Shown: positions 2,125-62,965 of the stretch, in pieces
Numbering within the stretch: the first letter of the stretch is position 1
Layout of the letters: each line of letters opens with the position of its first letter
Assembly (NCBI RefSeq): GCF_003918875.1
Contig: NW_025767046.1
Span: 2,604,001 to 2,668,000 of the forward strand
Length of the DNA: 64,000 nt
Direction: 5' to 3'
From: Haliotis rubra
Taxonomy: Eukaryota
Position numbers and translations under genes: made by a program
Notes under the pieces: model-generated
Databases searched by the model: none
What the model saw: only the letters and a program-made list of their open reading frames with translations
What the model was told of the DNA's origin: nothing

Positions 2125-3969
2125 ATGGCTTTCCTCGCAGTAGCTCTTCTATCTGTCATATCTCACCTGGCTTTGGGTCAAGGTTTTGGACAGAGCAATA
2201 CAGGTGTTGGTCAAGCTAATGCAGGATTTGGTTTGGGTCAGGCAGGAGGGTCTTGGGGTCAAGCTGGATTTGGAGTTGGTGGAATTGGCGCTGGTGGATT
2301 TGGTAACCATGGACGCGGGATTGGTGGAGCAGGTTGGGGTCAAGTAGGAGCAGGATTTGGCCAGAACATTGTCAACCCTTTCCTGAGTGAGTATTAATGC
2401 ACAATATAATTTACAACCAGGTCAATTCGCTTTATGATCATCGAACGCCCGACAGTATTGTATATTGATACGGGAATACTTCAGGTGTCTTCCCGATACC
2501 CATGTTCACTTGACATGCGGGATGTATTGACAATATGTTATGTTTTACAAAACGATGTTTGTGTTTGAGGGTCCAGAATAGTAAACGGTTAGATCCTAAA
2601 ACATAAGTGCACATTTACTAACCATTAAACGCCTATTTGTATTATATATGGGGTAACGTATTATTTTCTTTTTGCCCCAGATACAACCATCACATGCACT
2701 GGAACAGCTACAGGATTTGCCTTCTCTGCGACCCTAAGGAGGATGCAGCCATCTTGGGGAGGATGGGGTGTAAGTAGTCTCATTCACTGACTGAATTGGC
2801 CTGGGGTTTCGGGTGTTAGAAACTTCTTTAAAGTTAAACACTACATTTAATAGTACCTACGTCAGTTATGTACAAACAGATTGATTCATTTGTCAATACA
2901 GCTTGGTCGATCTAGAAGTGGACTGACTGGATCTGCCGTTCTAAGGACTACAACCGCATCAGGAACCTACAACCTCGTCATCACTGAGAGGTCTCGTGTT
3001 GAGGCTGGATGTACCGCTGATGGACTTGGACCTGTCATTGGAAGGTAGGGACGAGGTGTTCTTGATATGGGTCGTTTGGATGGGGTGGGATTAGTTAAAA
3101 CAATATTGGGAAAGTATTATGTATTTTGGGGTTTGAACCACACACGTTTAACGAGTGTTTAAAGAATTTTCACATTTTTACGCTTGAATAAAACTTTTAT
3201 CCCGACCGGTAAAGAGAAGTTCTCTAATGCATCTTGATATCACACAATGTCTCTTCAACAGCAACGTTTGGGGCCAACGTCAAGGTCTTGGTCAAGGCTG
3301 GGGTCATGGTCTTGGTCAACAGTGGGGTCAAGGTCTTGGTCAAGGATGGGGTCATGGTCTTGGTCAACAGTGGGGTCAAGGTCTTGGTCAACAGTGGGGT
3401 CAGCCATGGGGACAGCAATGGGGACAAGGTTCATTGGGCACCGGAACGACCACCACCCCCGGAGTTGTCAGCTCTGTCACCCTCACTACCAACCAGGAGA
3501 CCATCGTTGACTTGGGTACTGCCAACCTACCATTCAGAGAGCTCGAGAGATACGGAGGACGTGGTCTGGCTGTAAGTATTTTTTAAAAACTTGTTTGAAG
3601 TCATTTTATAGTGTCCAGACAATTTAAAGGAAGTCCTATTGTCCGCTTATGTACGTTTTTAATCAAATCCACCATCGGCGTAACAGGGAAATTTGGATTC
3701 ATCACACATAGTTAACAATGTGTGAATCACTCAAATTGAAAACAGAACAAAACAAATGTCTGGTTAGACCTGTAAGTATTAAGTGTTATAATAAACTCTG
3801 TAAGATAGATGTAGCTCTGTAACTAATGGCATTGTCTTACTGTTGTTTTCAGTTGTGCACATCCTTGACCACTGGCACTGATGGACGTCAAGTGTGTATG
3901 GAGCCTATTCTGGCCTGCTGCAAGTTGGGATTCGACAACATGGACGCTGTCACACCAACACCTCCATAA
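2125..3969 (+). CDS. Paralog A: secreted Gly/Gln/Trp-rich protein with C-terminal 6-Cys (putative degenerate Cu/Zn-SOD-fold) domain, 306 aa
   Basis: Exons 2125-2386, 2681-2769, 2902-3044, 3262-3571, 3853-3969. All introns GT-AG; spliced frame open to TAA. Signal-peptide-like MAFLAVALLSVISHLALG|Q; C-terminus LCTSLTTGTDGRQVCMEPILACCKLGFDNMDAVTPTPP. Confidence 0.93.
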
Positions 3970-5589
3970 ATGAGTGATGGGGAAGATGGAAGAAGTGTGT
4001 GAATGTTGAATGCAAAATGTGTGAAAACGTTTGTTATGTTACCAATAATCAATATATTTAGATAATTATACAATTTCTCATATTTTCATTTCATGTGACA
4101 TTGCTACATTTGTTGTCTGCATGTCCCTGCATGTTTATCATCAGTCATTATCAAAAGTACAAAAGATATTTATTTCATAAATAAAAAAATACGAAAACAA
4201 CACGTGTTTCATACTTCTTATGTCAAAACAGCATCAGTAATTATGTGCAAACACGTGTCATTAGACACGTGGATCACTTCTCTGAGAGACGAAAGGTGAC
4301 TGCAGTGCCAAGGATTGTATGCCAGATCGTGGCTTTGAGTGAGTGAGTCAGTGAGTTTAATTTTACGCCGCACTCCTCATTATTCCATCTAAAATGACGG
4401 CGGTCTGTAAATAATCGAGTCTGGACCAGACAATCTAGTGATCAACACCATGAACATCGATCTGCGCTATTGGGATACGATGACATGTGTCAACCAAATC
4501 AGTGAGCCTGACCACCCGATCCCGTTAGTCGCCATTTACGACAAGCATGGGTTACTGAAGATCAATTCTAACCCGGATCTTCACGGGTCTCATGGCGTCC
4601 GCTTTGACAGACGAAAGGGTGACCCAAGTGCAAATGATTCATGTTGGATCACAGCTTGGATGGGAACATGTGGGACCCTGAGGTCGAAGACGCCAGAACT
4701 GATTGTGTACGCAGGTTTTCCATTTACACGGATTTGACAAACCTTGATGTAACTGAAATGTATTTTAAATAAGTGTAAAACGTTTCTCATTGAGTCACTG
4801 CTCTTACAGTATTATCATCGTAGAGGAATTCCTACCTTGAAGCGGATGCCTGCTTGATTGGTCAGAATAATATTAATATTAGAAAATGCACCAGCCTTTT
4901 CATACCTGGACTTCCGTATGATTAAACATATCCATCGATAGCCTATCAGTGTATACAACAATGGTTGTCTCTTTTACACTGCAGAAGCACCAGTCCAAAC
5001 ATTATGAAGTGAAGGTGAGGTGAAATGGGGTTTAACGTCGTATTTAAGAATATATCGCTCATATGACAACGTGCATGCGTGTGTATGTGTGGCTGCTTGT
5101 ACTAGCCCAGACTTAAGCTGGTTTTATAGTGCTAGCTCACTGAGATACCATGCCGCAGTTAAGCATGGCTACCCTACTCAGACACATTATACCGACTCCG
5201 ATCCGACCAGTCCCAGGCCGGGAACAACAAGTGCCATATTTTAACGTCTTTTGATATGACGCGGCCGAAGATCGAACCCGCGACATTTTGCTCTCCATAT
5301 AAAGAAGTCTGTTTCAAAACATATTAAATATAGCTGCTAGTGACCCATCAAACAAAAGTCTATATCAGTGTTAGCACAAGATTAATTCCAGTGCGATTGC
5401 TCCGTCACGGAAAGAAAGAATACTTAATTCATAAGATCATATTTTCAACACCCGGGGATCATTCAACTCGCGTAGCCACTAGACGCACCAGGTTAGTGTG
5501 GCTTTCCCATCCTTACGAGGTACCCATTCACAGCTGGGTGGACAGGGACACATAGTCACAGTACTTTGTCCAAGTTTACTGCACGTTGC

Positions 5590-11560: not shown

Positions 11561-13766
11561 ATGGCTTTCCTCGCAGTAGCTCTCCTATCTGTCATAGCTC
11601 ACCTGGCTTTGGGTCAAGGTTTTGGACAGAGCAATACAGGTGTTGGTCAAGCTAATGCAGGATTTGGTTTGGGTCAGGCAGGGGGGTCTTGGGGTCAAGC
11701 TGGATTTGGAGTTGGTGGAATTGGACTTGGTGGACGTGGGCTTGGTACCCATGGACAGGGAATTGGTGGAGCAGGATGGGGTCAAGTAGGAGCAGGATTT
11801 GGCCAGAATATTGTCAATCCGATCCTGAGTAAGTATTTATGACTTATATAATTTTCGTTTCAAACTGAAAATGTTCTTTCTAAATTTTAGGCAACAGCTC
11901 AAAATAGTTAACGCTAGACGCTAGACCTTTAAGAAGCTATGTTGATCGCTGGACTGTCTGGTCCTGACTCGATTATGTACCGCCATATAAATTGAAAATT
12001 GCTGAGTGCGGCTTGTAAGAAAAAACAAACAAACCAACCAATCCTTTAGAAGCTTGGACATTGCCTAACGAAATTATTCCTTGTATGTTTATATTGTACG
12101 ACTTAAAGAGTTTAACTCGAGGAACTCCCCGATACACATTGCAACTGGACATTCCCTGAACATTTGCTTACTTAACTACCATTTGTAAGTTCAGTGTTTA
12201 ACTGTAACTGTTTTCCCCCAGATACGACCATTACATGCACTGGAACAGCTACAGGTTTTGCTTTCTCTGCGACCCTAAGGAGGATGCAGCCGTCTTGGGG
12301 AGGATGGGGTGTAAGTACATGTAGTCTTATCTATTGACTGAACTGGTCTGGGGTTCTGAGGGTCAGATACTTCATGAAGTGTTTCTTCACTGACGGACAA
12401 AAGAAAGTATAAAATCGTGTTTGATGTGGGTCTCATGGTTGTTGAACCTGAAGTGTGTAATTGGCATAAGCCTGGTAACTTTAGATGAGGAATATTATAT
12501 GTATTTTAGCAAATCCACATTCGTTTTTGACAGTCACTACATACTCCTCCCCTGACTTGAGTGTTTTGAAACGAACTGAGATTGTTTTTATTACAGTTTG
12601 GTCGATCACGTAGTGGACTGACTGGATCTGCCGTTCTTAGAACTACAACAGCGTCAGGAACCTACAACCTCGTCATTACTGAGAGATCACGTGTGGAGGC
12701 TGGATGTACCGCTGATGGACTTGGACCTGTCATTGGAAGGTAGGGACGGGTCATTTGTCATTTAGATTCCTCTGAAGGGATGAGGGAAGTGTAAACCATT
12801 CTGGGAAAGAAGTATGTGTCTCCCCAAGCAAATGTTTAATATATCTTTGTATCAGTAAAGCATTTTCTCATTAGCAATTGTAAAAGGAAACGATTATAAA
12901 ACATCACCTAGTCTCCTCCACACCAGCATGTAATGGTCTCACCATTAACACTTAGCATTTAAAAAAGTATCACATTTTAAAAATGAATAAAATGTTTGCC
13001 GGAAAATTGTTGTCAAATGCATCTTGATATCACACAATGTCTCTTCAACAGCAACGTTTGGGGCCAACGTCAAGGTCTTGGTCAAGGCTGGGGTCATGGT
13101 CTTGGTCAACAGTGGGGTCAAGGTCTTGGTCAACAGTGGGGTCAAGGTCTTGGTCAACAGTGGGGCCAGCCATGGGGACAGCAGTGGGGACAAGGTTCAT
13201 GGGGCACCGGAACGACCACCACCCCCGGAGTTGTCACCTCTGTCACCCTCACGACCAACCAGGAAACCATTGTTGATTTGGGTACTGCCAACCTGCCATT
13301 CAGAGAGCTTGAGAGATACGGAGGACGTGGGCTGGCTGTACGTATTTTGTTTAAATCACATGTAAAGTTACTTCATAGTCCCCAGAGACTTAAATAATGT
13401 GTCTATTATGTACAATTTTAACCAAACCCACCGACGGGGAAATTGAAAGCTGTGAGTTGTTTCAATAATATTTTATGTCATTTCATAGTCCTCACAAAAT
13501 TGGAATTACACCCGCCGGGGACGTGTCGGGGAAATAAAAATGATTACGAAATACAATTTGTTGAGTGCTTCACAGATTTATCAGTGCAGGAAGGTAAGAG
13601 TTAAACTATCCACCCCAAACAAATAACACTACCTTACTATTGTTTTCAGTTGTGCACATCCTTGACCACTGGTACAGATGGACGTCAAGTGTGTATGGAG
13701 CCTATCCTGGCCTGCTGCAAGTTGGGATTCGACAACATGGACGCTGTCACACCAACACCTCCATAA
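11561..13766 (+). CDS. Paralog B, 300 aa (closest to A)
   Basis: Exons 11561-11828, 12222-12310, 12597-12739, 13052-13337, 13650-13766. Same phases and exon 2/3/5 lengths (89/143/117) as A. Confidence 0.93.
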
Positions 13767-17990: not shown

Positions 17991-19507
17991 TACACCTGGA
18001 ACTTAATTAAGCACCCCCTGATATATTTCATGATAGTAGAGCAACTGTTAACCATCGTTAAACATGAATGATATCTCTGTATTACAACACATCTCTAGTA
18101 GTCTAAAAAGGTGTTTCAGTTCCTTTGCACTCGTCACAACGCATCCCTTGTGCACGTGAAGCATACAACCCACACATTTCCCAAAATTCAGTTTCTCTGA
18201 CATGCAATTGATGGGTATAAAAGCAGACAAATTTGTAACTATCTCCATTAATGAATACTGAAATGGCGAGGAGAAGACTTTCTGAAGCACTAAGGTGGCA
18301 AATTGTCGGCATGCATGCAACAGGCATGTCCTCCAAAGCTATTGGACGACAACTGGGCTACAGTCACTCGGTCATCAGCCGACGTGTCCGAAAACATCAG
18401 ATGACAGATGTGAGAGATCGTCCAAGGCCTGGACAACCCAGATAGACAACGGCCCGTGATGATCGCAGCCTGGCACGTCTGGTAAGGCGAGAACCCTTTG
18501 CCACAAGTTCGGTTTTGAAGCGCCTGTGGTTACCCTACGGACAATTATCCACCAGAACCGTCTGAAATCGCCTTAGGGCACTAAGTATGAGGTCCAGAAG
18601 AGTCATCAAACGTCCTGCTCTGTCTGATCTCCATAAGAGACGACGTCTGGAGTGGTATATGGCCCGTCGGCAGTGGAACCTGAGGACATGGAGGATGGTC
18701 CACTGGTCAGATGAGAGCAGGTTCCTCCTCCACGTTACAGATGGTCGAATGAGAGTGTGGAGGCATAAAACACTGCTTCCGTGCCCAGGAATATCCACCC
18801 TACTGTTCCTTATGATGGAGGATCGGATATGATCTGGAGTTGTCTTTCACACGACAGTAAACTTCAAATGGTGACTGTCCGAGGAAATCTTGATGGTCAG
18901 CAGTACATCCGGGATATTCCCCGTCCAGTTGTCGTGCCTCACTTTGACAACCACCCGTTGGCTACTCACCCGATATTCATGGATGACAACGCCAGGCCGC
19001 ATCGTTCACGTGCTGTGACCGCACATCTCCAGAATGAGGCTATCATGACATTACCTTGGCCAGCAATGAGCCCCGATTTGAATCCTTTGGAGCACATCTG
19101 GGACTTTCTTGGACGCCGTGTGAGGTTGAGAGAACCCCTCTCCAGCATCTTGAATCTGTCATCCAAGCACGTGGGGGATACACCCGATACTGATGCCAGA
19201 CCCATCAGATGTTAACATGTGACATTCCTTGTGCATCATTTCTTGTAATAGTCAGCCATTGACAATGCTACGACCATACTTGTTCAGTGACTATTTTCAT
19301 CAAGAATCAATAGTGACCAAATCACATTGGTTACGCTATTAAAACAACACGTATTGGAATCATTGTCTTGTTTTTCATTTGCCAATAGATCGTATGTTTC
19401 ACAATAGCTAAGGTTCCACTATCTTTGGAATAGTGAGAGAGTTACAGCAAGTTTTGTTTCTCATCATCCAGAAAATAGGGGGGGTGCTTAATTAAGTTCC
19501 AGGTGTA
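17991..19507 (+). mobile_element. Tc1/mariner DNA transposon (DD34E), defective
   Basis: TIRs TACACCTGGAACTTAATTAAGCACCCCC / GGGGGTGCTTAATTAAGTTCCAGGTGTA flanked by TA. Transposase from ATG 18263: HTH region, GQPR (GRPR-like), WSDESRF, FMDDNARPH, WPAMSPDLNPLEHIW with 34 aa between D and E. Two in-frame stops and a frameshift near 18780. Confidence 0.95.
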
Positions 19508-21751: not shown

Positions 21752-24700
21752 TTAAGGGGCTGCCGGGGTGACAGCATCCATGTTGTCGAATCCCAACTTG
21801 CAGCAGGCCAGGATAGGCTCCATACACACTTGACGTCCATCAGTGCCAGTGGTCAAGGATGTGCACAGCTGAAAACAACAGTCAGGTAGTGTTATTTGTT
21901 CGTCTTAGAGAGATTAAGGCCATTTGGTTAAAAGAACATTTCCACTCTAAGGACACTTAAGAAAGATTTTCTTTTCGACATTTGATACTCTCATCCTTGA
22001 CCTGAATTGATTGCTAATAATCTCAAATATGAATATCTTAATAATAAGGAGAAGTCTTATAAAAAGCAACAAAGCATGCACAAAGCGCTAACACCCTAAT
22101 TTTTATTACCCCGGATAACCCAAGCTGCCTGTTTGGCGCTAGAAGGTTATAGTCACATGACTTTATCCAACCGGGTTCCCATTTTCTGCTGGGTGAACAT
22201 AGGCAAGTTTGAACAAACTCACTTGCCTAAGGTGAGACCACATGTATCGCACGTGCTTCGTTGTTGGGCAGGACGTAAGTCCTAGAAACTCTCAGGAGTC
22301 AAGTTTTCAAACACGGTCACCCATCCAATGACTGTCCGAGCTCGCCGCTGCTTAACTTCAACTGATTCGTGACCTGCGCTCTGTGCACAGGACCACACGC
22401 CACCACATCTTCAAATATATTGTAAATCTCCGGGGACTATGAAAGAACAATACATGCAATTTAAATCAACTACTTACAGCCAATCCGCGTCCTCCGTATC
22501 TCTCGAGCTCCCTGAATGGTAGGTTGGCAGAGCTCAAGTCGAGGACAGTCTCCTGGTTAGTACTGAGGGTGACAGAGGTGACAACTCCAGGGGTGGTGGT
22601 CGTTCCGGTGCCCCATGAACCTTGTCCCCACTGCTGTCCCCATGGCTGGCCCCACTGTTGACCAAGACCATGACCCCATCCTTGACCAAGACTTTGACCC
22701 CATCGTTGGCCCCAAACGTTGCTGTTGGAGAGACATAGTGTGATTTCAAGATGTAGTTGACAACAAATTTCCAGTAAACGTTTTATTCAAGTTTTAAAGA
22801 TGTGACCCCATCGTTGGCCCTACACATTGCTGAAAGTGTAAGGAAACATTCATTTCATATTCATCATATTATATCATTTTATGAAAAAATTGATGATTCA
22901 TCACTTGGATTCGTTATGATAACCTTAGAAATCATAAATATTTTCAGAAGTAAGTGATAATATAATAGTTTGTTGCTAATGCCACTTTCTAGAGACAGGC
23001 AGGATATGGTCAGATTTTTAACTTTTAAAGGTAGGTCCGAGATACAATACGCCAACATATCGCACGCATTTGACTATATGAATTTTGTAATCCTCCGCCT
23101 CCTTCGGAATCAAAATGATCCTTACCTTCCAATGACAGGTCCGAGTCCATCAGAGGTACATCCAGCCTCTACACGAGATCTCTCAGTGATGACGAGGTTG
23201 TAAGTTCCTGACACAGTGGATGTTCTCAGAACAGCAGATCCAGTCAGACCTCCGCGGGATCGACCCAACTGGAAAGGAAAAAACAAAACAAATATAGGGC
23301 ACTAGAGTTTGTGAAGATTCCACACTTCTGAAATGATGGAAGCGGATTTCAACAGTATGGCAACAGAGAATATATAATATCATTGCCAGACATTAACCAT
23401 CCTCGATTGTCTACCAAAACCGATTCCAATTGGCGTAAACGACAAAATTATATGAGTGAGTGAGTTGATTTTTACGACGCTTTTACGCAATATTCCAGCA
23501 ATATCACGGTGGGGAACACCTGAAATCGGCTGCACACATTGTAAGGCTTGCCCTCATTTCGCCTACAGTAATTTTAATGGCCATTTCTACCACCCCTATG
23601 ACAATAATGGGTATTACCCAACTGGCTGTTAACATTAAACAAATAGATCTTGTCTTCGGCGTGACGAGCGAACACCCCTGAAGTAATATGAACGGATAAC
23701 TGAAAAGCATGATGACACAAGACGTTTGTACAAAGGGAAAACATGTCCTGCACTAACTGTAACACGAACCACATTTTGCAAAATTTGTAGTTAAAGATAG
23801 GTATTGGTTTATTGTCTTACGCCGCACAGGAATACACCTGCAAAACGACCGCGGTCTCTAAACGAGTCGGGCGATGGGGTAGCCTTATGGTTAAAGCGTT
23901 CGCTGGTCACGTCGAAGGCCTGGGTTCGATTCCCCACATGGATACAATGTGTTTCTGGTGTCCCCCCGCCGTGATATTGCTGGAATATTGCAAAAAGCGG
24001 CGTAAAACCAACTCACTCGTCCTCTCTGAACGAGTCGCATGCATGGTACGCAGTTGACCTGTCATGTTGACCTGTTATATTTAAATAGAAGGAATTCAAC
24101 GTATACCACGGAGAACTTTGCTGACAATCACAGAAAGGTTATCAGGTCGAAACCGGGCTTCGAAACAAAGATCACGTGTTTCTGCCAGGCCTTAAGATCG
24201 CAACGTCGTAACGTCGCAACCGTAGAGACTGAGCAACAAATGTCTCTTAGTGAGTGAGTGAGCTTAGCGTTACGCCGCTTTAGCAATATTCCAGCAATAT
24301 CACGACGGGGACACCAGAAATGGGTTTCACACATTGTACCCATGTGGGAAGTCGAACCCGGGTCTTTGACGTGACGAGCGAACGCTTTAACCACTAGGCT
24401 ACCCCAGCGCCCCTTTTCCTTAGTGAATATGAAACAACCTCGTAGAACATCATTAAACAACTTACTCCCCATCCTCCCCAGCTGGGCTGCACCCTCTTCA
24501 GTGTGAAAGATCCCGTGATGCCTGTAGCTCCGAACGTGCAGGTGATGGTAGTATCTAAGAAGAAAAGCATAAATGTATAATTATAATTATTAGCCCATTC
24601 TTTAAAAAACCCTGCAGCTATTGATCTATTGCATTATTTATAATCATGTTTGATGTAAGTATTTAATCGATATTTCACGAAATACTGTTATGATCCATGT

Positions 24701-25569
24701 GTTTTCCTTGTTGCTTGAATGAATGTATTGTACATATACAGTTCTACTGAGATCACTACGAATATGACACCGATCCGGATCTGAAGTTGGACTGTAAATT
24801 GTTATACGGATTAGAATTGGTCTATGCTTGTTACGAGAGGCGAGTAACGGGTCAGGTTGTCAGGCTCGCTGACTAGGTAGGAACGCGTTAACGTATCCCA
24901 TATCGATGCTCATTTAGTCAATCACTGGATTGTCTGGATTGTTGCCTAGACTCGATTATTTATAAACCGCCGCGATATAACTGGGACATTGGTGAGTGCG
25001 GCGATAAACAACAGAAAATACCCACACACATAATAGTATCATACCTTAAAAGGGGGTACGGAATACATGGTGATGGCATTTTAGGTCGACGTAAATATTA
25101 CTGCCTTCGCTTACAGTGTTTTGTTGAAATAGTAGTATAACGAAACGAAAGCTTATCACTATAAATACTTACTGAGGAGAGGGTTAATCCTGATCTGTCC
25201 CCATCCTGTTCCTGCTTGACCCCAGCCAGCACCTGCTTGACCCCAGCCAGCTCCTACTTGACCCCAGCCTGCTCCTACTTGACCCCAACCGGCTCCTGCT
25301 TGGCCCCATCCAGCACCTGCTTGACCCAATCCAGCACCTGCTTGACCCCATCCAGCACCTGCTTGACCCAATCCAGCATTAGCGATTCCTTGTCCACCAT
25401 TGCCAAATCCAAGTCCGTTGATTCCAGATCCTATTCCAGCGGTGCCAATACCAAACCCAGCGTTACCTTGACCTTGACCTTGACCGGCGTTACTAAAACT
25501 CTGATCCCATCCTTGACCAAAGGTCAGGTGAGCTATGACCGATACAAGTGCTGCTGCGAGTAATACCAT
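21752..25569 (-). CDS. Paralog C, 329 aa, (GQAGAGW)n N-terminal repeats; mosaic gene
   Basis: Exons (minus) 25569-25173, 24554-24466, 23268-23126, 22721-22478, 21868-21752. Frame is open if the acceptor at 22722-22723 is used; a dead second exon-4 start lies at 22829. Confidence 0.88.
22105..22406 (-). mobile_element. 5S rRNA-derived SINE (SINE3-like) in intron 4 of paralog C
   Basis: Minus strand GAAGTTAAGCAGCGGCGAGCTCGGACAGTCATTGGATGGGTGACCG resembles the 5S internal control region (GAAGCTAAGCAGGGTCGGGCCTGGTTAGTACTTGGATGGGAGACCG), followed by a GTTCACCCAGCAGAAAATGGGAACC body. Confidence 0.65.
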
Positions 25570-35849: not shown

Positions 35850-36359
35850 GGTGTACGTGTGCTCGTGAAGGACTGAAGATGTCGATATTGCTGACTTGAC
35901 CTGACGGGGTCTATATACACCAGGGGAATAATTAGCCAGACTATTTGTTATGTCACTGAAATAAAGAGAAGCGCCTCTGGTCACAACACTGTTCCCACCT
36001 TCTTATATAATTAAGGGGTGGTAGATTAGTTACTTATTACATCGGAACGATCCCAGTGTGCAATAAAGTAATTACCAATCCCATAAGTAATTGATCCACG
36101 TGCTCTAATTTGATGAAAATATGCATACACAGTTACAGTTAGTAGTACTAACGAAATAGCTTACAGAGCAGTTCTAAGTTACTGCAATTAAACGTTATTG
36201 CAATAATGTCGACAAACTAGGTGGCGTTATTGTGTCGTAAGTGATAACCATTTCTTTTGCAAATAAAGGCCTAAGTATGAGAAGGGTCATCTTTAGATTT
36301 AATTTTTGCAGTATCCAACATGCACATTAAAAGCTTCCAGTGGGTGTGAATATGTGTAT

Positions 36360-36507
36360 NNNNNNNNNNNNNNNNNNNNNNNNNNNNNNNNNNNNNNNNN
36401 NNNNNNNNNNNNNNNNNNNNNNNNNNNNNNNNNNNNNNNNNNNNNNNNNNNNNNNNNNNNNNNNNNNNNNNNNNNNNNNNNNNNNNNNNNNNNNNNNNNN
36501 NNNNNNN
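36360..36507. other. Assembly gap (N run)
   Basis: Run of n; a ~50-bp direct repeat lies on each side (~36255 and ~36628). Confidence 1.
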
Positions 36508-40672: not shown

Positions 40673-42886
40673 TCAGGGGGCTGCCGGGGTGACAGCGTCC
40701 GTGTTGTCAAATCCCAACTTGCAGCAGGCCAGGATAGGTTCCATACACACTTGACGTCCATCTGTACCAGTGGTCAAGGATGAACATAGCTGGAAACAGT
40801 TTGAAGATAATGACATGTCATTGTTTTGGCAAGGATACACGTGGCTCAGGAAACAAACAATTATTCATTTTCAAATATCAAATTTGCAAGGCTATATATT
40901 TGCAAATACACTGTACACTGTTATAACGCAAAATGTGTTTTAAGGTTTAAATGGTATATTATGAGAATTGATTGAAGCTCAAATTTGTCAATAAAGACAT
41001 TCCTAAAGATGTAAAACCTGTCGGAGCAGATGGATATTCTGAAATGGTGCTGCATGTGACAAAATTATCGAGCACTTACAGCCATTCCGCGTCCTCCGTA
41101 TCTCTCGAGCTCCCTGAATGGCAGGTTGGCAGAAGCCAAGTCAACAACAGTCTCCTGGTTGGTGCTGAGGGTGACAGAGGTGACAACTCCGGGAGTGGTG
41201 GTCGTTCCAGTGCCCCATGAACCTTGTCCCCACTGCTGTCCCCATGGCTGACCCCACTGTTGACCAAGACCATGACCCCATCCTTGACCAAGACCTTGAC
41301 CCCATCGTTGGCCCCACACGTTGCTGAAAGTGTGAAGAAAAACTATTTTAGTCAAATCTGATTATCTTATCTCAGATGTTATTTTATGAATCGGTGAAAC
41401 AAAAACTTGCCTGAATCAGCTCGGTTTGATAAAGTAGGAATCTTTAACATAATGTTTCCCAGATAAATATCTTTTGAATATACTATGTCATGGATGGAAG
41501 GGGATTATTGTAGAAGCAGGATTTACAACACGAGATATGGTCAGATCATTGCATTTCAAGATAGGTCCGAGACGCAATCACATTGGATTATATACTAGTA
41601 TATTCAGTACACCCCTCCTCCTTTGGAAACAAAAAGATCCTTACCTTCCAATGACAGGTCCGAGTCCATCAGAGGTACATCCAGCCTCCACACGAGATCT
41701 CTCAGTGATGACGAGGTTGTAAGTTCCTGACACAGTGGATGTTCTCAGAACAGCAGATCCAGTCAAACCTCCACGGGATTGACCCCACTATAATATGTAA
41801 GAAAGAAGATACGTGAATGTTTTTTATAGTTAGTTATTCTGAGACATGCTTTTGAAGTAATAAGGACATAAGACATCTTCCAGGTTTACATAATCTACCT
41901 TCATTTCACGGCAGTACTAACCTAATGAAAGAACGAGGAAAGTTCCGTTTTGTTTTAGCATTGTTCAGTTGTTCCAAATCATTTACCATGTGGTGAAATC
42001 CACGCACATTGGGTTTTTTTGAAAAAGGGGTCATACAAACTAGCTGATATATACAAACGATTTTCAGTTTGACATAAACAGGTAACAAAAGCGCCCCTCT
42101 CTGTGGTGATATGTTAGTCTATCACACTGAATAAGTGACACATTCTGATAAGTGAACTGAAAAAAAAACTTACACCCCATCCTCCCCAGCTTGGTTGTCT
42201 CCTCCTCAGGGTCAAGGATCCTGTGATCCCTGTAGCTGTGAAAGTACAGGTGATGGTTGTGTCTGAAAACAAGGCAAAGCTAATTAAATCGTGCTGTACC
42301 ATTAACTTAATGTTCCAAAACATCATATTAACACAGCTTTGATCATTGCTCTACCGGCGTCTTACATTGCTTTACATCAGTTTAAATTTGTGTTCCAATT
42401 ACCATCTATAAGTTTGAAATTTGTTTGAGATTATCTTACATTAAAATGAATGTAATAAGAAACTATAAGAAGCTATGACTCACTCAAGATAGGGTTGACG
42501 ATGTTCTGTCCAAGTCCTCCCATTTGTCCCCACCCTGCTCCAAGTCGACCAAAGCCAAGTCTGGGTAGACCAAGCCCGAATCCTCCCTGACCTAAACCTG
42601 CTCCGGCTCCAGCTTGACCAAACCCAAACCCTGCCTGACCTAACCCTGCTCCTGCTTGACCAAATCCTGCCCCAGCTTGCCCCACACCTGCTCCTTCTTG
42701 ACCAAATCCGGCTCCTGCTTGACCAAAGGCTCCACCTGCTTGACCAAAACCTCCCCCTGCTTGACCGAAGGTGGCTCCAGCTTGACCCCAAGATGATCCA
42801 GTATTACCAAAGCCCATTTGACCCATACCTTGACCAAAGGCCAGGTGAGCAATGACAGATAGAAGAGCTACAGTGAGGAAAGCCAT
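40673..42886 (-). CDS. Paralog E, 331 aa (closest to D)
   Basis: Exons (minus) 42886-42484, 42262-42174, 41787-41645, 41323-41080, 40789-40673. GT-AG introns, open frame to TGA. Confidence 0.92.
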
Positions 42887-44445
42887 GGTGTACGTGTGCT
42901 CGAGAAGGACTGAATATGTCGATATTGCTGACTTGACCTGACCGAGTCTATATACACCAGGGGTGTAATGTTATTGCACATTATTATGTCACAGAAATGT
43001 AGGAATACGGAAGTCCCATCCCTGGTTCCCTACATAATCAAGGCCTGACCAATTAGATACGGCGTATGAATTTAAAAATACCTGACAAGTCATATATCAA
43101 ATGACCATGGTTTGATGACAACGAAGATGTTCACATAGATAACTAGTTGGACAGTCACCATGAAGCTCGATAGCTTGTGTCTGACAAATAATCAAATAAG
43201 AAGATTTATTTGGTAAGTGTGTCTTTAGCAGTGCTTTTTACTGATTTGTATCACTTTTGAAAAATTGAATTCGTGTTTCAAAACTGTTCTGTACTGAACT
43301 ACAACAAAGGGATTGCGAAAAGAAATTACATTAAACGTTAAGCACAACCTCCTCCTTCCATGTGTAATTCCATATAAAGTACGTTTGGACATTGTATAAA
43401 ACTATCGCGCAGTGTGATACCTTTCTGATGAAACGAATTTGGTTTTGTTCCCGTTGTTGCATTGTGAAATACGAAGCATAAAATCTGACAATTTATTGTG
43501 GAACATAATTTATCTCTTCAATCGTTTAGTCGGATCATTACATCGCACCATTGAAATGGCTTTTCCATTGTTTATTCTGTTGAGTTGTATTCCATCTTTG
43601 GGACGGCTGTCATTCTGTAAACAATACGTATACTCAGTATGAATCAGGAATTCTAGTGATTGACATCATGAGCATTGACCTACCCAATTGGGATACGATG
43701 GCATCAGCGAATCCGTTAGTCGCCTCTTGCGAAAAAGAACGGGTTGCTGAAGACTTAATCTAACCCGGATCTTCCCGGGGGAAGCTTTTCGACTATCCTA
43801 GGAACTTCTTTTAATTTTCTACAGGTATTTTTGCAGTGAAGAACATTCGAAATATATTAATATCACATGTAAATATTTGTATGGACATAAAAGGCACATA
43901 CAATTCAGAAAGGAGTGGTTCTTAGCTTTAACGTGTGTATCTGACGTTTGGATATTCTTACCCTTTTTCTTAAATATCTGGTGTAATCATGGGTTTCAGT
44001 GACCCATAATATAATTCACTATCATTTTGTCTTATTCGTTCTTTGCATTCTGTTTCATCAGGTCAGACTTCGAACATACGCGTTTGCTACGTTTTAACAT
44101 CTGAACAATATTTTCCTGAATGAGTTTTAAGTTGTCTCCGTGGATATTAATTTCGAACATTGAATCATATCGGACCATATAGTTCATGTACATACTGGCA
44201 CCTATTGCACCAGTGTGGAGGAAATGAAATAAGGCCATGTTTACATTCACATCTCCTTGGATGTATATTCAAGTGGTCAGGTGTATATTCAAGAACATTT
44301 AATCTTGAACGTTTATACATATGTGTTTACAAATGAAAAGATGTTGTTTTGAACGTTGAATCTTCAGTTTGAGAATGAACTACCGTGATATATGTGCTAC
44401 TACGTGTGTTACTTCTTTGTTGTAAAATTATCGGTACGAAGAATC

Positions 44446-44497
44446 TGAATGAATGAATGAATGAATGAATGAATGAATGAAAGAATGAATGAATGAA
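44446..44497. repeat. (TGAA)n microsatellite
   Basis: Direct reading. Confidence 0.9.
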
Positions 44498-49172: not shown

Positions 49173-52100
49173 ATGGCCATGCTGCATCTTGTTCTTGTGG
49201 CTGCTCTTGCTCACCTAACCTCAGGACAGGGTTGGGGAGCAGGACGTCTTTCACCTGGAAGGGGGGCTGTTGCACCTGGAATCGGGGGTGCTGGTCTTGG
49301 AATCGGAGGTGTTGGACCTGGAATAGGAGGCGCTGGATCAGGTTTTGGGGGTACTGTGTCTGGTTTCGGGGGTGTTGGGACAGGAATCGGGAGTGCTGGA
49401 CTTGGAATTGGTAGAACCTCTTCCTTTGGTCTGGGAGCATCATTGTTTGGTCTCATCAACCCTTACTACAGTACGTATGTTTCTTGTCGATTTTCAAAAG
49501 ATCAGTATATTATTATCGTTGATGACAGAAACAGAAAGGCAGGTTTCAGTGGTTTCTGTCACACCAGTCATTATAGTATCTTAAGAACCATAAGTTTCAA
49601 GGGTATTGTATATCCATGTCCATACAGTGCACGTGTCACCCTTACTTCATTGACTTACTTGACGTAGTTCTCTTTACTCCTTGAGGAGCATAGGGCCTCA
49701 ACAGTTGTCCTCCACGCTTGCCGTTCAATGGCTATGCTCTTGGCAGTCTCCCAGGTTAAGCCGGTTTCCATTAGTTCCTTATCCAGGCTTCGTCTCAAGG
49801 TCAGTTCTAGACGTCCTCTTTGCCTCTTGCCTTACTTCTTTACTATAGACAATATCAATATTTTTACAGACACAACAATCACCTGTTCTGGCACGGTGCC
49901 TGGATTCGCCTTCGCTGTTACCCTGAAAAGAGCACCACCAGTATTTGGAGCGTGGGTGAGTAAATGTATATTCAAGACGTTCTACACGTTAAGACAATCA
50001 TATTCTAACAAGTGGTCTCTTGTGACAACCTCTTGCCGCTTCACGCAACTTCATTAATGTCAAAAAGTTCGCGTTTAATGTCAGGTTCAAACTTCAAGGT
50101 TGAGGTTTCAAGTGAACTCTAGTGTTCGCAGTCTTCATATTCGAGTGTTGACATATCATTATCTATCTATAATTGTATGTATAATTGCGTCGATTTACTT
50201 GTTTAGAATGGTCAGTGAGTTCCTGAATTACTGCAACAAACAATACCGTGACGTCATTAAAGTGGTATTAAAAATAATTTCAAACGTGCACACAAACTGA
50301 CCTATGAGGAAGTGGTATAGCATTGGTCTTGCTTGACGACTATAGAGATTGGGTTGTCAGGTACATGGACTAGGCTGATGCATGTCATCGTATCCCAACT
50401 GCGTAGATCCATGCTCATGATGTCGATCACTAGACTGTCTGATCCAGACTCGAGTATATACAAACCGCCGCTATACAGCTGGACAGTTGCCAGGTGCAGC
50501 GTAAAACAACAAACTTTCGTCAATGAATTCTTGATTGTTACGGATCCAGTGGATTTATGTCCAAATGTATGTGTTTCCATTTTTTCACAGTGGGCTCAAA
50601 GGCAAGGTGGACTGAGTGGAAGCGTTGTGCTCAGAACTACATCTGCTACAGGGAACTTCCAATTTGTTCTCACTGAGCGAGCCCGTACTGAAGGAGGATG
50701 TACTCCAGATGGCCTGGGGAATGTCTTTGGCAGGTATGCCGTTAAAATGATACATCATGTCAAATGTACATAAGCTCCTCGTGAATTGATGTTCACGTGA
50801 ATCTTGTTCAAATATGGTTCATTGCTCCTAGCTCTGTTGATCGGAATGCATTACAGCTATCATTCTCAACTCCCTGGAGAGTATAACTCAAGCAGCCGAC
50901 GGGCGTTCGAAGGTGTTTCTATCAACCTCACATATCGTCATAGCAATTCGGGTTAGAATTGGTCCTAAACAACTCATGCTTGTCGTAAGAGGCGACATCG
51001 AATCCCAATTGCTTAGATCGATGCTCATGCTGTTGATCACTGGCTTTTCTGGTTCAGATTTGATTATTTACAGACCGCCGCCATATAGCTGGAATGTTGC
51101 TGAGTGCGGCGTAAAACTAAACTCACTCACTTCGAAGCTCGTTATGTGGATCACTGGATTGTCTGCCGCCATATAGCTGGGATACTGCTGGGTGCGGCGT
51201 AAAACTAAACTCACTCACTTCGAAGCTCGTTATGTGGATCACTGGATTGTATGCCGCCATATAGCTGGGATACTACTGGGTGCGGCGTAAAACTAAACTC
51301 ACTCACTTCGAGGCTCGTTATGTGGATCACTGGATTGTCTGCCGCCATATAGCTGGAATACTGCTGAGTGCGGCGTAAAACTAAACTCACTTCGAGGCTC
51401 GTTATGTGGATCACTGGATTGTCTGCCGCCATATAGCTGGAATACTGCTGAGTGCGACAAACGTTTAAACAACAAACAAACAAAATCACATACGTGAACC
51501 TTTTTCCTGAATGGTGGACTCTTTTTAACTTGCGCAGCATGACACTTATCTTTCCGACACTTGTGTTACGGATGCATCAATCGTTTTTTTTGTTGCACCC
51601 ACCTGGTCATCAAATGCATTACTAAGCACAGACGTTTTGCATAGTTCACTAATTAATTTTAGTCGTTTAGGATGTAATACAAACTTGAACTTTCGCTGTT
51701 CTTCATTCCTAAACTCAGCAATCCTTTTTTCCGTAGTAACGCTCTGGGCCTTGGACTCGGTCAAGTGTTTGGGCAACAGTGGGGTCGGGGTTTTGGAAAA
51801 CCATGGGGTCAGATATTTGGTACTGGCAGAGTCACCCGGCCTGGAGTCGTTGCCGATGTGACCATTGCCAACGGAGGCAGGACCCTTGACGTGGCCTCAC
51901 TCAATCTGCCGTTCAGAGACCTCGAGAGATATGCAGGACGTGCCTTTGCTGTAAGTGACTTTCCCAAACCGTATCCAAAACTAACATTTGACAGTATCAA
52001 CGACAATGTGTAAGTCAATTGTTTTACCTGTGACATAATGAAAGGCAATGATTGAAACAGATGTAGTAAGCCCTGTACGAATAAGACGTATGAAAACATT

Positions 52101-52784
52101 ACAATTCTTGCAATCGTTTAATGTTTTATGCAAAACTGCAAATTTGGAGATTCAAACTAATTACCCATGGTTTGTTAACTCCTTACGTCACCAAAGTTGT
52201 ACACGTTAAAGACCTGAACCTAGATTTTCGAAGCTCTCTTAGCGCTAAGATAGTCGTAAGTTAATGTTAATGTATGGCCCTTACTACTATCTTAGCGCTA
52301 ACCCAGAACTTCGAAAATCTAGGCCCTGAATCACATTTCAGGTAATGGACTCTTAGCGCTAAGAGAAATCTAGGCCCTGAATCACATTTCAGGTAATGAC
52401 TCCAACATTACCCGACACTTCTTGGTGTAACTGAAACGGCTCACTATATAGATTTTGAGCATGAAATGAAAACTGTTATATGACCTGTCACCGATGGAAT
52501 GGTTCAATTCTGTCCAAGGCTCACTATATCGATTTTGAGCATGAAATGAAAACTGTTATATGACCTGTCACTGATGGAATGTTTCAATTCTGTCCAAGGC
52601 TCACTATATCGATTTTGAGCATGAAATGAAAACTGTTATATGACCTTTCACTGATGGAATGTTTCAGTTCTGTCCCAGCCTGACTACAGGTGTTGATGGT
52701 CGCCAGGTGTGTATGGGGCCTATTTTGGCATGCTGCAAACTGGGATACAACAACCAGGACGCCGTTGTACCTACTCCGCTCTGA
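49173..52784 (+). CDS. Paralog F, 285 aa, divergent member with GIGG-type N-terminal repeats
   Basis: Exons 49173-49470, 49870-49955, 50591-50733, 51737-51950, 52668-52784. Conserved TTITC, EGGCTPDGLG, PGVV, LERYAGRAFAFC, QVCMGPILACCKLGY. Confidence 0.9.
51131..51455 (+). repeat. Tandem array (~88-bp unit x4) derived from the family-2 SINE 3' end
   Basis: Units begin TTCGA(A/G)GCTCGTTATGTGGATCACTGGATTG at 51131, 51219, 51307 and 51391. Confidence 0.9.
52217..52325. mobile_element. Short MITE (Harbinger-like) in intron 4 of paralog F
   Basis: TIR CCTAGATTTTCGAAG...CTTCGAAAATCTAGG with internal CTTAGCGCTAA motifs; CTG on both flanks; partial re-duplication at ~52351-52398. Confidence 0.6.
52438..52677 (+). 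repeat. 80-bp triplication spanning the intron 4/exon 5 boundary of paralog F
   Basis: Units start at 52438, 52518 and 52598. Confidence 0.9.
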
Positions 52785-54159: not shown

Positions 54160-54298
54160 NNNNNNNNNNNNNNNNNNNNNNNNNNNNNNNNNNNNNNNNN
54201 NNNNNNNNNNNNNNNNNNNNNNNNNNNNNNNNNNNNNNNNNNNNNNNNNNNNNNNNNNNNNNNNNNNNNNNNNNNNNNNNNNNNNNNNNNNNNNNNNN
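54160..54298. other. Assembly gap (N run)
   Basis: Run of n. Confidence 1.
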
Positions 54299-55298: not shown

Positions 55299-55426
55299 AC
55301 CTCTGAATATGTGTAATTGTGATGGAAACGAACAATTGGGGATTCAGAACCTGAGCAAATCTAGACTTGATTTAGGCTGTAGCATTGCTAAATGGAAAGG
55401 GAAATAATGCGTTTCGGGGACTTGGA

Positions 55427-55781: not shown

Positions 55782-55782
55782 T

Positions 55783-60212: not shown

Positions 60213-60455
60213 ACCCGTGAAGGTCCGGGTTAGAATATTGATCTTCAGTAACCCATGCTTGTCGTAAGAGGCGACTAACGGGATCGGGTGGTCAGGCTTG
60301 CTGACTTGGTTGACACATGTCATCGGTTCCTAATGGCCTAGATCGATGCTCATGCTGTTGATCACTGGATTGTCTTGTCCGGACTCGATTATTTACAGAC
60401 CGCCGCCATATAGCTGGAATATTGCTGAGTTCGACGGAAAACTAAACTCATTCTC
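60213..60455 (+). mobile_element. SINE-like family 2 (~240 bp), no canonical tRNA head, starts ACCCGTGAAG
   Basis: Contains CATGCTTGTCGTAAGAGGCGACTAA and shares the family-1 3' tail. Copies at 99-336- (TSD AACACCTACATGA), 4337-4588-, 9031-9268-, 24810-25012+, 34165-34380+, 43650-43778-, 50345-50512+, 50948-51130+, 61412-61595+, plus fragments. Confidence 0.85.
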
Positions 60456-61857
60456 TCACACTGGGTTCATCATCTCTTGTGAGAATTTACCTCGTGGTAA
60501 AGCAGAACCAGCTGATTTTGTAGAGGGATTCGTAGCTAAAATTAAGAAGCTATCATTTAATATTTGGTTAGGTGTGGTGTGGTGTTGGTAGTGTGTGTGT
60601 TGACAGTAATTACTTACTGCTTTAAATGTGCATATTAATTGGTTTGTTCACACATGCACAAACAAGATAACTTTCCTGCAAAATATGTAATAAAAAGCAA
60701 AAGTCAGATTTGCATTATTCGAGCATCATAAATTACATTTAGGAGGATCAGGTCACTCCATAGAAAATTATTTTAACTGATCCTATGGGATAGAATCACT
60801 CCCTGTATACTTCCTGCATTACATTCTGTCGGTAACAGCTCCCCCTTCCCTCTCCCTACCCAAGTTAACTACTTTCCCAAACCTTTATGGTGTAATTGTA
60901 TTAAACAGCTGTAAGACAAGTGAAAAGAGCCCAAACTTTGTCTCGCCAATGTACTGCTAAGATCTTAAAGGTAAATATATTAAAATGCATCTAATATGTA
61001 AGTATATATATATTCCATTGATCAGAATATAAATTTTCATAATGTTTCTTTATGTAGTTTGTAATGATTAAGCAATGCATGTTGTCTCAACTAATGAAAA
61101 TATGTGAAATATGCATAATTGTATATTTTGAATGAAGTGGGAATGTATTTCAAAATACAATGAAGATGTTAAGCTCCATGAGATAATATTTCAGCAGAGG
61201 TACTGAAGAATATAGCAAAGTGTGGAAGTGTAATGTCCTGAGCCAAATCTCTTACGTCATCGAGATCCTTGATGTCATCACTAGTGTGTTCGAGTGTGAG
61301 ATAGGTGCCAAAGATAACTTTGTTAAACCAAAGCAAAGCAAATTCTCTGTTCCACGAGACCATCTCTGTGAAGCAATTGGTTCATAACAATGTCATCCCA
61401 TACTAGTCACAGAAGATCCTGGTTAGATTTGGTCTTCAGCAACCCATGCCAGTCTTAAGAGCGAATAACGGGATCGGGTGGACAGGCTCGCTGACTTGGT
61501 AGACACATGTCATAGTATCTCATTTGCGAAGATCGATGCTCATGAATTTGATTACTAGATTGTCTGGTCCAAACTCGATTATTCACAGACTGCCATAAAA
61601 AACTTCTCCAATTCTTTATTTCTTATTTGATAGAAATACATCCCACAAATACAAATAATGTCTCAGCGTTTGTTTTTGAAGATGAGTGCACATTTTTCTA
61701 ATGTGCATGGTTGAGTTGAATAATGTATATCAGAGATTTTAAAATATGTGTCTGTGTAACCAAAATGAACACATTGCCTTGCCTGAATAGAAAAAGACTG
61801 AATTACTATATGTTCAAAATGCATATCGAGGAGGCCAGACTGGGAATATTTTTCCTC

Positions 61858-62965
61858 TTAGGGTATGGGAAGTAGGACGGCATCCTGGTTGTCATAACCC
61901 ACTTTGCAGCAAGCAAAGACTGGGTCCGTACACACTTGGCGACCAAAAGCATCTGTTGTAAAACCAGTACACAACTGCAACAAGATTTGACGACATCAGA
62001 CACTTAAGTTTAGGGCATTATATATTTTAAAAACGATAGACAATATTATTTAGGACAAACAACGCACAAAACTACCACTGTTTTCCTCCTTTGATATTCA
62101 TTTGTATATATAGTAAATTTTGTATTAAACATTATCGTAAGACCTCTTACAAAACATACATACTGTATTCTGACGGATATTAGCACGGTGTCTCAGACGG
62201 TTTGTATAAAAGGATATTTTCAGGAAAATACTGGAAAAAATTAAATGGCAGTTCGATTATATCAGTTGAATGTACAGTGAAATCTACTCACAGCAAGTCC
62301 TATTCCAGAATATCTCTCAAGGTCATCAAACGGCATGTTCACTGAAGCCACGTCAATCGTAATTTCCCTGTTTTGTTGCAGCGTTACCTCAGCAATGACT
62401 CCTGGTCGGGTATTTGCCGGGGCAAAGAAGTTGAAACGTTGACGAGGTCTTTGGTGGAAAACGAGAACAAGACATAATAAAGCTAGGATGTGCTTCTATG
62501 AACAATAAATGATACGTCTATTTACCAAGATAACTGAAACTCTAGAGAAAAATATACCAGCAAATGTTTTCATCGTGCGTCTTGTACAGAAACCATCTTC
62601 CTCAGCAGTGGTTGGAGAACTGCTAAAGCTGACACTAGCTCATCAGTGCTTAAGCAAAACACGATATGAATATTGACGGCAATTTTGAATGTAAATAATA
62701 AGTGGTTATCTTTTTCGCATGTAAAGTCACCAAACTGTCTGAAATGTTTAGAGATATGTAACGAAAGTTCTCTTTGTTTCACAAGAGCAGCGTTTATCAT
62801 AAATGATCTAAAATGATAAACATACCTTTGAATCACAGGCCCCAATCCATCAGATGTACATCCTCCTTCAACGCGGGCTCTCTCGTTGGCTACAAGTAAA
62901 AAGGTTCCAGAAGCCGTTGTTGTTCGGAAAACGAACATTCCACCAAGAGTTTGACGTCTGAGCCA
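61858..62965 (-). CDS. Paralog G, partial (exons 3-5 only; 5' exons presumably beyond the window); lacks the GQW insert
   Basis: Exons (minus) 62965-62826, 62448-62292, 61974-61858: WLRRQTLGGMFVFRTTTASGTFLLVANERARVEGGCTSDGLGPVIQR/PRQRFNFFAPANTRPGVIAEV...LERYSGIGLA/LCTGFTTDAFGRQVCTDPVFACCKVGYDNQDAVLLPIP*. Confidence 0.85.

Follow-up and report, generated by a model that had tools for sequence, protein, structure and literature searches.

A tandem gene array in the abalone Haliotis rubra that encodes a domain derived from Cu/Zn superoxide dismutase

Introduction

What is the conserved domain that is repeated across a tandem gene array in abalone, where did it come from, and what might the proteins that carry it be for? 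The question arises from a stretch of 64,000 nucleotides of Haliotis rubra (contig NW_025767046.1, positions 2,604,001 to 2,668,000 of the forward strand), which we will call the window. An earlier note, made from the sequence alone, described seven paralogous genes in the window (A to G) with a fixed exon architecture, whose products were thought to be secreted and to combine low-complexity sequence with a "Cys domain." The evidence strongly supports the view that this domain keeps the fold, the gene structure, and two disulfide cysteines of Cu/Zn superoxide dismutase (SOD), and that it is a scaffold and not a dismutase. On balance, we think it fairly likely that the array encodes secreted proteins with a metal-free, SOD-derived scaffold, and that these proteins dimerise and self-associate into extracellular material.

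Fold of the conserved domain

In the AlphaFold2 model of protein E, eight strands are predicted with a local distance difference test score (pLDDT) of 70-86, and both the N-terminal arm and a stretch of WGQ repeats are disordered. When this model was compared to known structures with VIA-wide, ranks 1-13 were all Cu/Zn SOD or domain 2 of CCS (Z 6.8-8.7), and the top matches from Foldseek were SOD and EA4. We also modeled the domain alone from an intronless paralog elsewhere in the genome (L004; pLDDT 81, predicted TM score 0.78). For this model, every Foldseek match down to rank 49 was a Cu/Zn SOD or one of its relatives, EA4 and CCS (probability 1.00, best E 3.5e-4, TM 0.6-0.7). The top 14 matches from VIA-wide were all from the SOD family, with Z of 11.3-14.9 and root-mean-square deviations of 2.4-3.4 Å over 113-144 residues, and the next match had Z of 7.3. 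The models thus strongly support a Cu/Zn-SOD-type, eight-stranded, Greek-key beta-barrel as the predicted fold of the "Cys domain."

A language-model feature search gave three best clusters that carry Sod_Cu (score 0.86), which we consider to be a lead only. One member of the family from Lottia is named "SOD copper/zinc binding domain-containing protein" in UniProt. The profile and fold searches used exon sequences, intronless loci, and database proteins; the joined models of A-D, F, G, and three further genes (M3-M5, see below) were used only for translation, dN/dS, and the tree.

Gene structure and descent

We compared the family's gene structure to that of a real SOD gene. The reference gene is from the same genome (L015, on C2431), and its four domain exons encode a ligand-complete SOD, with the ligand motifs HGFHVH, GGHYNP, THG...RHVGD, and IVVHAG and the end ...SRVACCVIGRGVK. 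The four introns of L015, of phases 1-0-2-0, are found just before strand 1 (x|YATCVV), after strand 2 (SQTD|YCGYYGD), within the Arg79 codon of the zinc loop (DEK(R)|HVGD), and at GRAIV|VHAG. The introns of the abalone family have phases 1-0-2-0 at the equivalent places: (N)|TTITC, GGWG|LGRS, GPVIG(S)|NVWGQ, and GRGLA|LCTS. In both L015 and the family, the last intron falls exactly between GR..x and the position of H120. The phases alone would match by chance about 1 time in 81. Because both the positions and the phases of the introns are those of a real SOD gene, we conclude that the domain descends from Cu/Zn SOD and does not merely resemble it. The "fixed exon architecture" of the earlier note was inherited from a Cu/Zn SOD gene, and an exon for the signal peptide and the arm stands in front of it.

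A global pairwise alignment of the whole domain with free end gaps was meaningless, so we replaced it with an exon-wise alignment on the shared introns. The anchors that are common to the family and to L015 in this alignment are TC, GCTS, RY..GR, and ACC.(I/L)G.

Two side observations concern SOD genes elsewhere in this genome. Several canonical copies lie close together at C2431:9000-66000 (L015, L017, L018, and L020), which suggests a tandem array of real SOD genes. Also, positions 1333-3370 of L016 (on C2665) contain two overlapping open reading frames (ORFs) in different frames (489 and 275 amino acids) with several SOD domains, some of which are degenerate; these resemble the copper-only SOD repeat proteins of oysters.

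Loss of the metal site and the loop insert

The metal ligands of human SOD1 are H46, H48, H63, H71, H80, D83, and H120. In the family, the positions of H46, H48, H63, H80, D83, and H120 are occupied by V, T/N, G, N/P, G/R, and C, respectively, and the stretch around H71 is deleted (as anchored on GCTS and the last intron). By this mapping, all seven metal ligands appear to have been lost. A census of histidines, which does not depend on any alignment, found none in the F and G domains and 1-2 in each of the other copies, every one of them within the WGQ insert. As there is no histidine in the barrel of F or G, a dismutase site cannot exist there, and we predict that dismutase activity is absent. 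In contrast to the ligands, both cysteines of the SOD disulfide (in GCT and ACC) are at their anchored positions in all ten intact copies, and their pairing is putative.

The start of the WGQ repeat, 2 residues past intron 3, is the place at which H80 and D83 of the zinc sub-loop are found in a real SOD. In the model of E, the repeat is a disordered stretch that follows strand 4 and the disulfide sub-loop and precedes strand 5. Across 56 anchored representatives of the family, the distance from the disulfide sub-loop to the GRG motif ranges from 43 to 132 residues, and the loop is filled with unrelated, low-complexity sequences: in abalone, glycine with Q/W; in Plakobranchus, poly-Asp with G/F; in Elysia and Physella, G/Y; and in others, M/G or H/G. 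(The Physella member is named "elastin-like" by RefSeq.) The former zinc loop is a hot spot that has repeatedly taken up repeats across the family.

We also considered whether the WGQ repeat could be a copper-binding octarepeat of the prion type, and we rejected this candidate. Pfam's Prion_octapep model gave E = 0.14 on exon 4 of F (12.7 bits, versus a cut-off of 32), and the prion repeat is of the HGGGW type with one histidine per repeat, whereas the abalone proteins have 0-2 histidines each.

A predicted dimer and a proposed mechanism

We predicted a homodimer of residues 134-331 of E, which gave an ipSAE of 0.69, versus 0.00 for the best control. This mark is reached by 21 of 30 solved homodimers and by none of 23 solved monomers (17 of 29 and none of 30 for eukaryotes). 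The dimer runs had at least 76% of their contacts in common, and the pLDDT of the partner was at least 70. The predicted interface (residues 138-143, 193-198, 285-291, and 317-322) comprises strand 1, the segment that precedes the disulfide cysteine, the RYGGRG loop, and KLGFDN at the C-terminus. It coincides with the most conserved motifs of the family, and it is presumably the equivalent of the dimer face of SOD1.

Each protein consists of a signal-like N-terminus, a disordered arm, and an eight-stranded, SOD-derived barrel in which a WGQ loop repeat replaces the zinc sub-loop. The arm is made up of 7-residue Gly/Ala/Gln repeats with one aromatic or other hydrophobic residue per unit. We propose that the barrel would dimerise via the SOD1-type face, so that each dimer would display two arms and two loops, with regularly spaced aromatics in a Gly/Gln/Ala background. 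These arms and loops would associate multivalently to form an extracellular gel, coat, or particle. Slippage of the repeats in exons 1 and 4 would tune the lengths of the arm and the loop copy by copy.

Several points weigh against this proposal. None of the sequence-based methods connected the family with SOD. Pfam's Sod_Cu model (PF00080) did not match the exon translations of A, F, or G or the intronless paralogs; nor did it match 63 representatives of the family at E ≤ 0.01 or six more at E ≤ 10. A genome-wide scan with PF00080 found 26 places, none of them within the array. Searches of the sequences in the PDB with phmmer and with a hidden Markov model of the family gave no match, and when the family profile was compared with one SOD domain of H. 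rubra by hhalign, the probability was 0.25%. The mapping of the ligands is an ungapped anchoring at short motifs and not a structural alignment. The passing score for the dimer may reflect the model's memory of solved SOD1 dimers, in which case it would indicate likeness rather than binding; also, the benchmark for this tool did not include partly disordered chains, and the family alignment was not used. The N-terminal sequence and a predicted helix are all that suggests secretion, and the self-assembly and the role in a material are proposals. Finally, the sequencing runs described below are coded, and their RNA label is a guess.

Gene models in the window

We built gene models from a list of ORFs and from the sequence itself, by homology and by inspection of splice sites, both by hand and with a script. 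The rebuilt models agree with the earlier note on most points: the seven paralogs have the orientation + + - - - + -; the intron phases are 1-0-2-0; the exon lengths, including the ranges for exons 1 and 4, match exactly; and the frame of each complete copy is open. In addition, all introns are GT..AG, and no copy has an internal stop. The proteins are secreted-looking, as had been described; they have a signal-like N-terminal helix, low-complexity arms, and a conserved domain with six cysteines. The proposal that exons 1 and 4 vary by in-frame expansion also holds, as length differences are always multiples of 3. Exon 4 changes in size by 24-nt tandem units (eight residues, of the GQGLGQQW type), and exon 1 by 21-nt tandem units (seven residues, of the FGQAGAG or GQAGAGW type).

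Gene A (+ strand; exons at 2125-2386, 2681-2769, 2902-3044, 3262-3571, and 3853-3969, or 262/89/143/310/117 nt) encodes 306 amino acids, with GT..AG introns of phases 1-0-2-0. According to Tandem Repeats Finder, the WGQ repeat array in its exon 4 (3279..3430, + strand) has about 5 copies of a 24-nt unit (8 amino acids, GQGLGQQW type), with a super-unit of 48 nt. Upstream of gene A, about 60 nt before its ATG, we noticed TATATAAA at 2062-2069. Gene B (+ strand; 11561-11828, 12222-12310, 12597-12739, 13052-13337, and 13650-13766; 268/89/143/286/117 nt) encodes 300 amino acids.

The next three genes are on the - strand. Gene C (25173-25569, 24466-24554, 23126-23268, 22478-22721, and 21752-21868; 397/89/143/244/117 nt) encodes 329 amino acids, and the repeat in its exon 1 (25199-25378, - strand) has 8.6 copies of a 21-nt unit. 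Gene D (35396-35849, 35081-35169, 34654-34796, 33675-33915, and 33287-33403; 454/89/143/241/117 nt) encodes 347 amino acids, with 10.9 copies of a 21-nt unit in exon 1 (35514-35750, - strand). Gene E (42484-42886, 42174-42262, 41645-41787, 41080-41323, and 40673-40789; 403/89/143/244/117 nt) encodes 331 amino acids. Gene F is on the + strand (49173-49470, 49870-49955, 50591-50733, 51737-51950, and 52668-52784; 298/86/143/214/117 nt) and encodes 285 amino acids.

Gene G (- strand) had been taken for an incomplete copy, which is not correct. Exons 3-5 are in the window (62826-62965, 62292-62448, and 61858-61974; 140/157/117 nt), and exons 2 and 1 lie just past its end, at the equivalent of window positions 64589-64674 (86 nt) and 65308-65482 (175 nt), which are positions 589-674 and 1308-1482 of L013; these two exons were identified by homology only. 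The complete protein is 224 amino acids long, with a short arm and no WGQ insert in exon 4.

The RefSeq protein for locus G (XP_046578041.1 or P0027, 211 amino acids) looks chimeric. Its N-terminal part includes 44 residues (SVPVLQQ...ERKIGP) that are an out-of-frame reading of exon 5 of a neighboring pseudogene (H, see below), fused directly to exons 3-5 of G. Our homology-based model, with exons 1-2 at 65308-65482 and 64589-64674, is a normal 224-aa member of the family, unlike P0027. RefSeq labels for the genes here are "spidroin-1-like" or "fibroin heavy chain-like."

Extent and history of the array

To find other members, we searched the whole assembly with profiles of exon 3 and exon 5, and we mapped the exons on 134 kb of the scaffold. 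There are indeed seven members in the window, but the array itself is larger, with at least 13 loci over about 123 kb of the same scaffold. Upstream of the window are three more intact genes of the A type (M3, M4, and M5). Two divergent members have the same domain: M1, which is RefSeq protein P0039 (424 amino acids), and M2, which has a long exon 1 of the GGAMGG type. Beyond the window, at C2156:2672745-2675700 (L013), is H, a copy of G that is a pseudogene with frameshifts in exon 1 and exon 3. Two isolated fragments that resemble exon 3 flank the array.

A phylogenetic tree places orthologs from H. asinina, H. rufescens, or H. cracherodii with each of four lineages (G, F, E-type, and A-type). 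Orthologs of F were found in all three of these species, and an ortholog of G in H. asinina. Genes A, B, M3, M4, and M5 form a clade that is specific to the H. rubra lineage. Since the lineages have orthologs in other species of Haliotis and one clade is specific to H. rubra, we believe that the array is old within Haliotis and has expanded recently.

The genome also contains an intronless, processed copy of the window's subfamily, at C25:550485-551783 (L003, 986-2284), with an open frame of 432 amino acids. It has an ortholog in H. asinina (P0002), and it has lost a cysteine of the SOD disulfide (GC to TK). It is possibly a retrogene that was kept for a changed role. A second subfamily in H. 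rubra is intronless as well. It has the same SOD-derived domain without the loop insert, along with C-terminal repeats of the GMNQGLP type, and it is found on C266 (at least five clustered copies, e.g. L006 1074-2072), C2600 (L004 1055-1948), C313 (L005), and C2405 (L007).

Selection and expression

The earlier note proposed purifying selection and suggested dN/dS as a check. We ran this test with the Nei-Gojobori method on 159 aligned codons of the domain (exons 2, 3, and 5, plus exon 4 without its repeats). In every one of the 45 pairs among the ten intact copies, dN/dS was 0.02-0.31, as expected under purifying selection. Among these copies, dS ranges from 0.10 to 3.1, so they are distinct loci and not collapsed alleles.

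In support of the models, the spliced translation of E is identical, residue for residue, to an H. rubra RefSeq protein (P0003, 331 amino acids). We also aligned contigs from four public runs to gene A. These runs represent two related species and three studies. The runs are coded and their RNA label is a guess; we call the contigs "transcript-like." All four junctions of gene A were seen in these contigs from related abalones, in agreement with the predicted splicing. In one 795-nt contig of a related species, 2386>2681 and 3044>3262 of A are joined exactly; the same contig joins 2769>2902 with three substituted letters and 3571>3853 with one. The junction 3571>3853 was seen in three further runs, and the second junction in one other run. 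The contigs are 90-99% like gene A and begin within its 5' leader, so they are not from the diverged intronless copy on C25. Contig depth was up to 3164 in one run. Of the two outcomes that the earlier note said would refute it (junctions missing from transcripts, and dN/dS close to 1), neither was seen. We did not find any of the sampled gene words in the H. rubra runs that are labelled RNA (X8-X13).

Range of the family

We searched 1.84 billion representative sequences with a profile of the domain and obtained 62 clusters at E ≤ 0.001, of which we looked up 30. All of the named members among these 30 clusters are from gastropods, namely Haliotis, Gigantopelta, Patella, Lottia, Littorina, Nucella, Lymnaea, Physella, Bulinus, Plakobranchus, and Elysia. 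The earlier note called the cluster lineage-specific. This stands for the subfamily with the WGQ insert, which has so far been found only in Haliotis, but not for the domain family, which is found across gastropods. We found no description of the family in the literature when we searched by RefSeq-style names, by Lottia protein numbers, and for SOD-like shell proteins.

What the proteins might make

The earlier note suggested a biomaterial, such as that of the shell or periostracum, an adhesive, or an egg case. Could the mantle secrete these proteins as components of the shell or periostracum matrix, to be incorporated into the shell? They look secreted, are glycine-rich and repetitive, and belong to a tandemly amplified and fast-changing family, like many shell matrix proteins; relatives in other gastropods carry poly-Asp or Tyr/Pro-rich repeats, which are typical of mineral-binding or sclerotised proteins; and inactive SOD-domain proteins do enter the shell matrix of oysters (PMC6530089). 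However, eleven family motifs from tryptic peptides were absent from 28 supplementary files (some partial) of the nacre and prismatic proteome of H. laevigata. (Peptides of the family's domain include ...SGTYNLVITER and ...QVCMEPILACCK.) Similarly, 17 supplementary files of the Lottia shell proteome contained none of the Lottia members 155722, 228102, and 228678 and neither of two peptides, and motifs of the Lymnaea member were absent from two supplements of the Lymnaea mantle atlas. Several of the files are partial, so the absences from shell proteomes are weak negative evidence. Neither the H. laevigata nor the Lottia shell proteome is known to have sampled the periostracum. The family also has members in the sacoglossan sea slugs Plakobranchus and Elysia, which are not known to have a shell as adults. 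Overall, we doubt that these are shell or periostracum proteins, and a role in the calcified layers of the shell is unlikely. In another material, limpet mucus, motifs of the Patella member were absent from the one supplement of the study that we checked.

Alternatively, the family might be the gastropod counterpart of cavortin, dominin, and pernin from bivalves, that is, an abundant SOD-fold particle protein of the haemolymph or mucus that acts in defence, metal handling, or transport. These would share a class of ancestry, being extracellular SOD folds without catalytic capacity, and the three bivalve proteins are without SOD activity, aggregate with themselves, and bind both metals and microbial patterns (PMC6530089). 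The very high contig depth in one run would fit an abundant protein, and tandem expansion is also typical of immune effectors. On the other hand, cavortin and dominin are homologues of Cu/Zn SOD by sequence, with a Cu/Zn SOD domain (PMC6530089), while the abalone family has no Pfam match and no ligand, and only 0-2 histidines per protein are left to bind metal. A partial file of reading frames from haemolymph and tentacle of H. laevigata contained no motif. We consider this explanation to be about as doubtful as the shell. It is far less plausible that the family comprises active extracellular superoxide dismutases with unusual ligands: the fold and the descent would fit, but the barrels of F and G have no histidine, six ligand positions are substituted, the stretch around H71 is deleted, and the zinc sub-loop is replaced by a disordered repeat. 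We give equally little credence to the idea that the genes are decaying duplicates or assembly artefacts without a function. Copy H is a pseudogene with two frameshifts, and isolated fragments that resemble exon 3 flank the array, but there are ten open frames with dN/dS of 0.02-0.31 and dS of 0.10-3.1, there are orthologs in three other species of Haliotis, and spliced transcripts were seen.

Our preferred explanation is still that a secreted, metal-free, SOD-derived scaffold dimerises and self-associates into extracellular material. A more ambitious idea, which we consider to be rather improbable, is that gastropods use this stable, dimerising, metal-free barrel as a programmable block, whose zinc loop and N-terminus take up lineage-specific cassettes that tailor extracellular materials. 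Abalones would use WGQ as the cassette; sea slugs, poly-Asp with Gly/Phe, or Gly/Tyr; and other members, from species that we did not look up, Met/Gly or His/Gly. As part of this idea, the Trp/His/Gly/Gln loop of abalone, which recalls the prion octarepeat, might restore weak copper binding at the lost zinc site.

Gaps, repeats, and flanking sequence

The window contains two assembly gaps. One (148 N, 36360..36507) is intergenic and lies 510 nt upstream of the ATG of gene D. The other (139 N, 54160..54298) is intergenic between F and G, 1.4 kb past the stop codon of F and 7.6 kb from that of G. Both are outside of every exon and intron, and all of the reading frames are therefore independent of them. 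Continuity of the sequence across the gaps is putative. D and E are alike over only 83 nt upstream of the start codon (35850-35932 and 42887-42969, 93% identical). This short, conserved proximal region could contain the core promoter.

The introns had been described as carrying heavy insertions of transposable elements, which was overstated. They are 132-1197 nt long, and most of the transposon material is intergenic; short dispersed repeats are found only in intron 2 of C, intron 3 of F, and intron 2 of G. The repeat in intron 2 of C is about 165 nt long and is present as an inverted pair (23869-24018 and 24249-24413), as well as in many other places. Its translation reads GRWGSL.VKAFARH...HMGTMCE, and a first look gave over 12,000 candidates genome-wide. 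It is probably an element like a SINE (short interspersed nuclear element) or a MITE (miniature inverted-repeat transposable element).

Between B and C, at 18587-19215 of the window, are ORFs with a Tc1/mariner-type transposase signature (SPDLNPLEHIWDFLGRRV), which we recognised by eye only. Between C and D, at 27270-30850, is a degenerate minisatellite of 3.5 kb with a period of 21 nt; its higher-order units measure 81, 165, and 468 nt. Both strands are open (1006 amino acids on - and 961 on +), and the sequence reads as rich in Ser, Asp, and Thr. Because the frame is open on both strands, a stop-free repeat suits this sequence better than a gene.

Implications and comparison with known systems

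A previously unnamed family of gastropod proteins can now be identified as a metal-free descendant of Cu/Zn SOD. Automatic annotation gives its members wrong labels, namely "spidroin-like," "collagen-like," "PE-PGRS-like," or "RNA helicase A-like." The conserved intron phases are a rare case of evidence from gene structure where the similarity of the sequences has been erased. The family is also an example of the reuse of an enzyme's fold as a scaffold, in which one loop repeatedly takes up low-complexity repeats. In abalone, shell proteomes have missed the product of this array, which is expressed and has at least 13 genes. Because the domain is small, well folded, and probably dimeric, it makes questions about the material- or particle-forming proteins of molluscs testable.

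Among known proteins, the silk-like proteins of the abalone mantle, Has-GRBP and Has-CL10Contig2, are similar to the family in that they are secreted, glycine-rich, and repetitive, but this is a likeness of composition only. Has-GRBP has GMGA and QQQV repeats, Has-CL10Contig2 has GN and GGSGGSGFG repeats, and an SOD-like domain is not mentioned for them in the paper that describes them (PMC4944945). We considered Has-GRBP (named as a "glycine-rich boundary protein") as the identity of these proteins and rejected it, as the repeats differ. Like the family, the CSRPs are extracellular, SOD-derived proteins of molluscs with a modified metal site (PMC12217663). Unlike the abalone proteins, which have one domain plus repeats, the CSRPs are arrays of SOD domains and are proposed to be extracellular superoxide dismutases (PMC12217663).

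Cu/Zn SOD itself (SOD1 and extracellular SOD; PF00080) shares with the family the Greek-key barrel, the positions and phases of four introns, the anchor motifs with the two cysteines of the putative disulfide, and the predicted dimer face. The abalone family differs in that it has no Pfam match, lacks the seven ligands, and has a WGQ repeat in place of the zinc sub-loop. Its electrostatic loop is also shorter by about 6 residues, it has four additional cysteines, and its N-terminal arm is long and rich in Gly.

Cavortin (Cg-EcSOD), dominin, and pernin from bivalves come closest to the family among known proteins; they are likewise secreted molluscan proteins of SOD ancestry without dismutase activity. 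In contrast to the gastropod family, they are still homologues of SOD by sequence, and they bind metals; the paper on them mentions neither a low-complexity arm nor a loop insert (PMC6530089). In bivalves, they are known as major proteins of the plasma. All three form particles by self-aggregation, and dominin also occurs in the shell matrix (PMC6530089).

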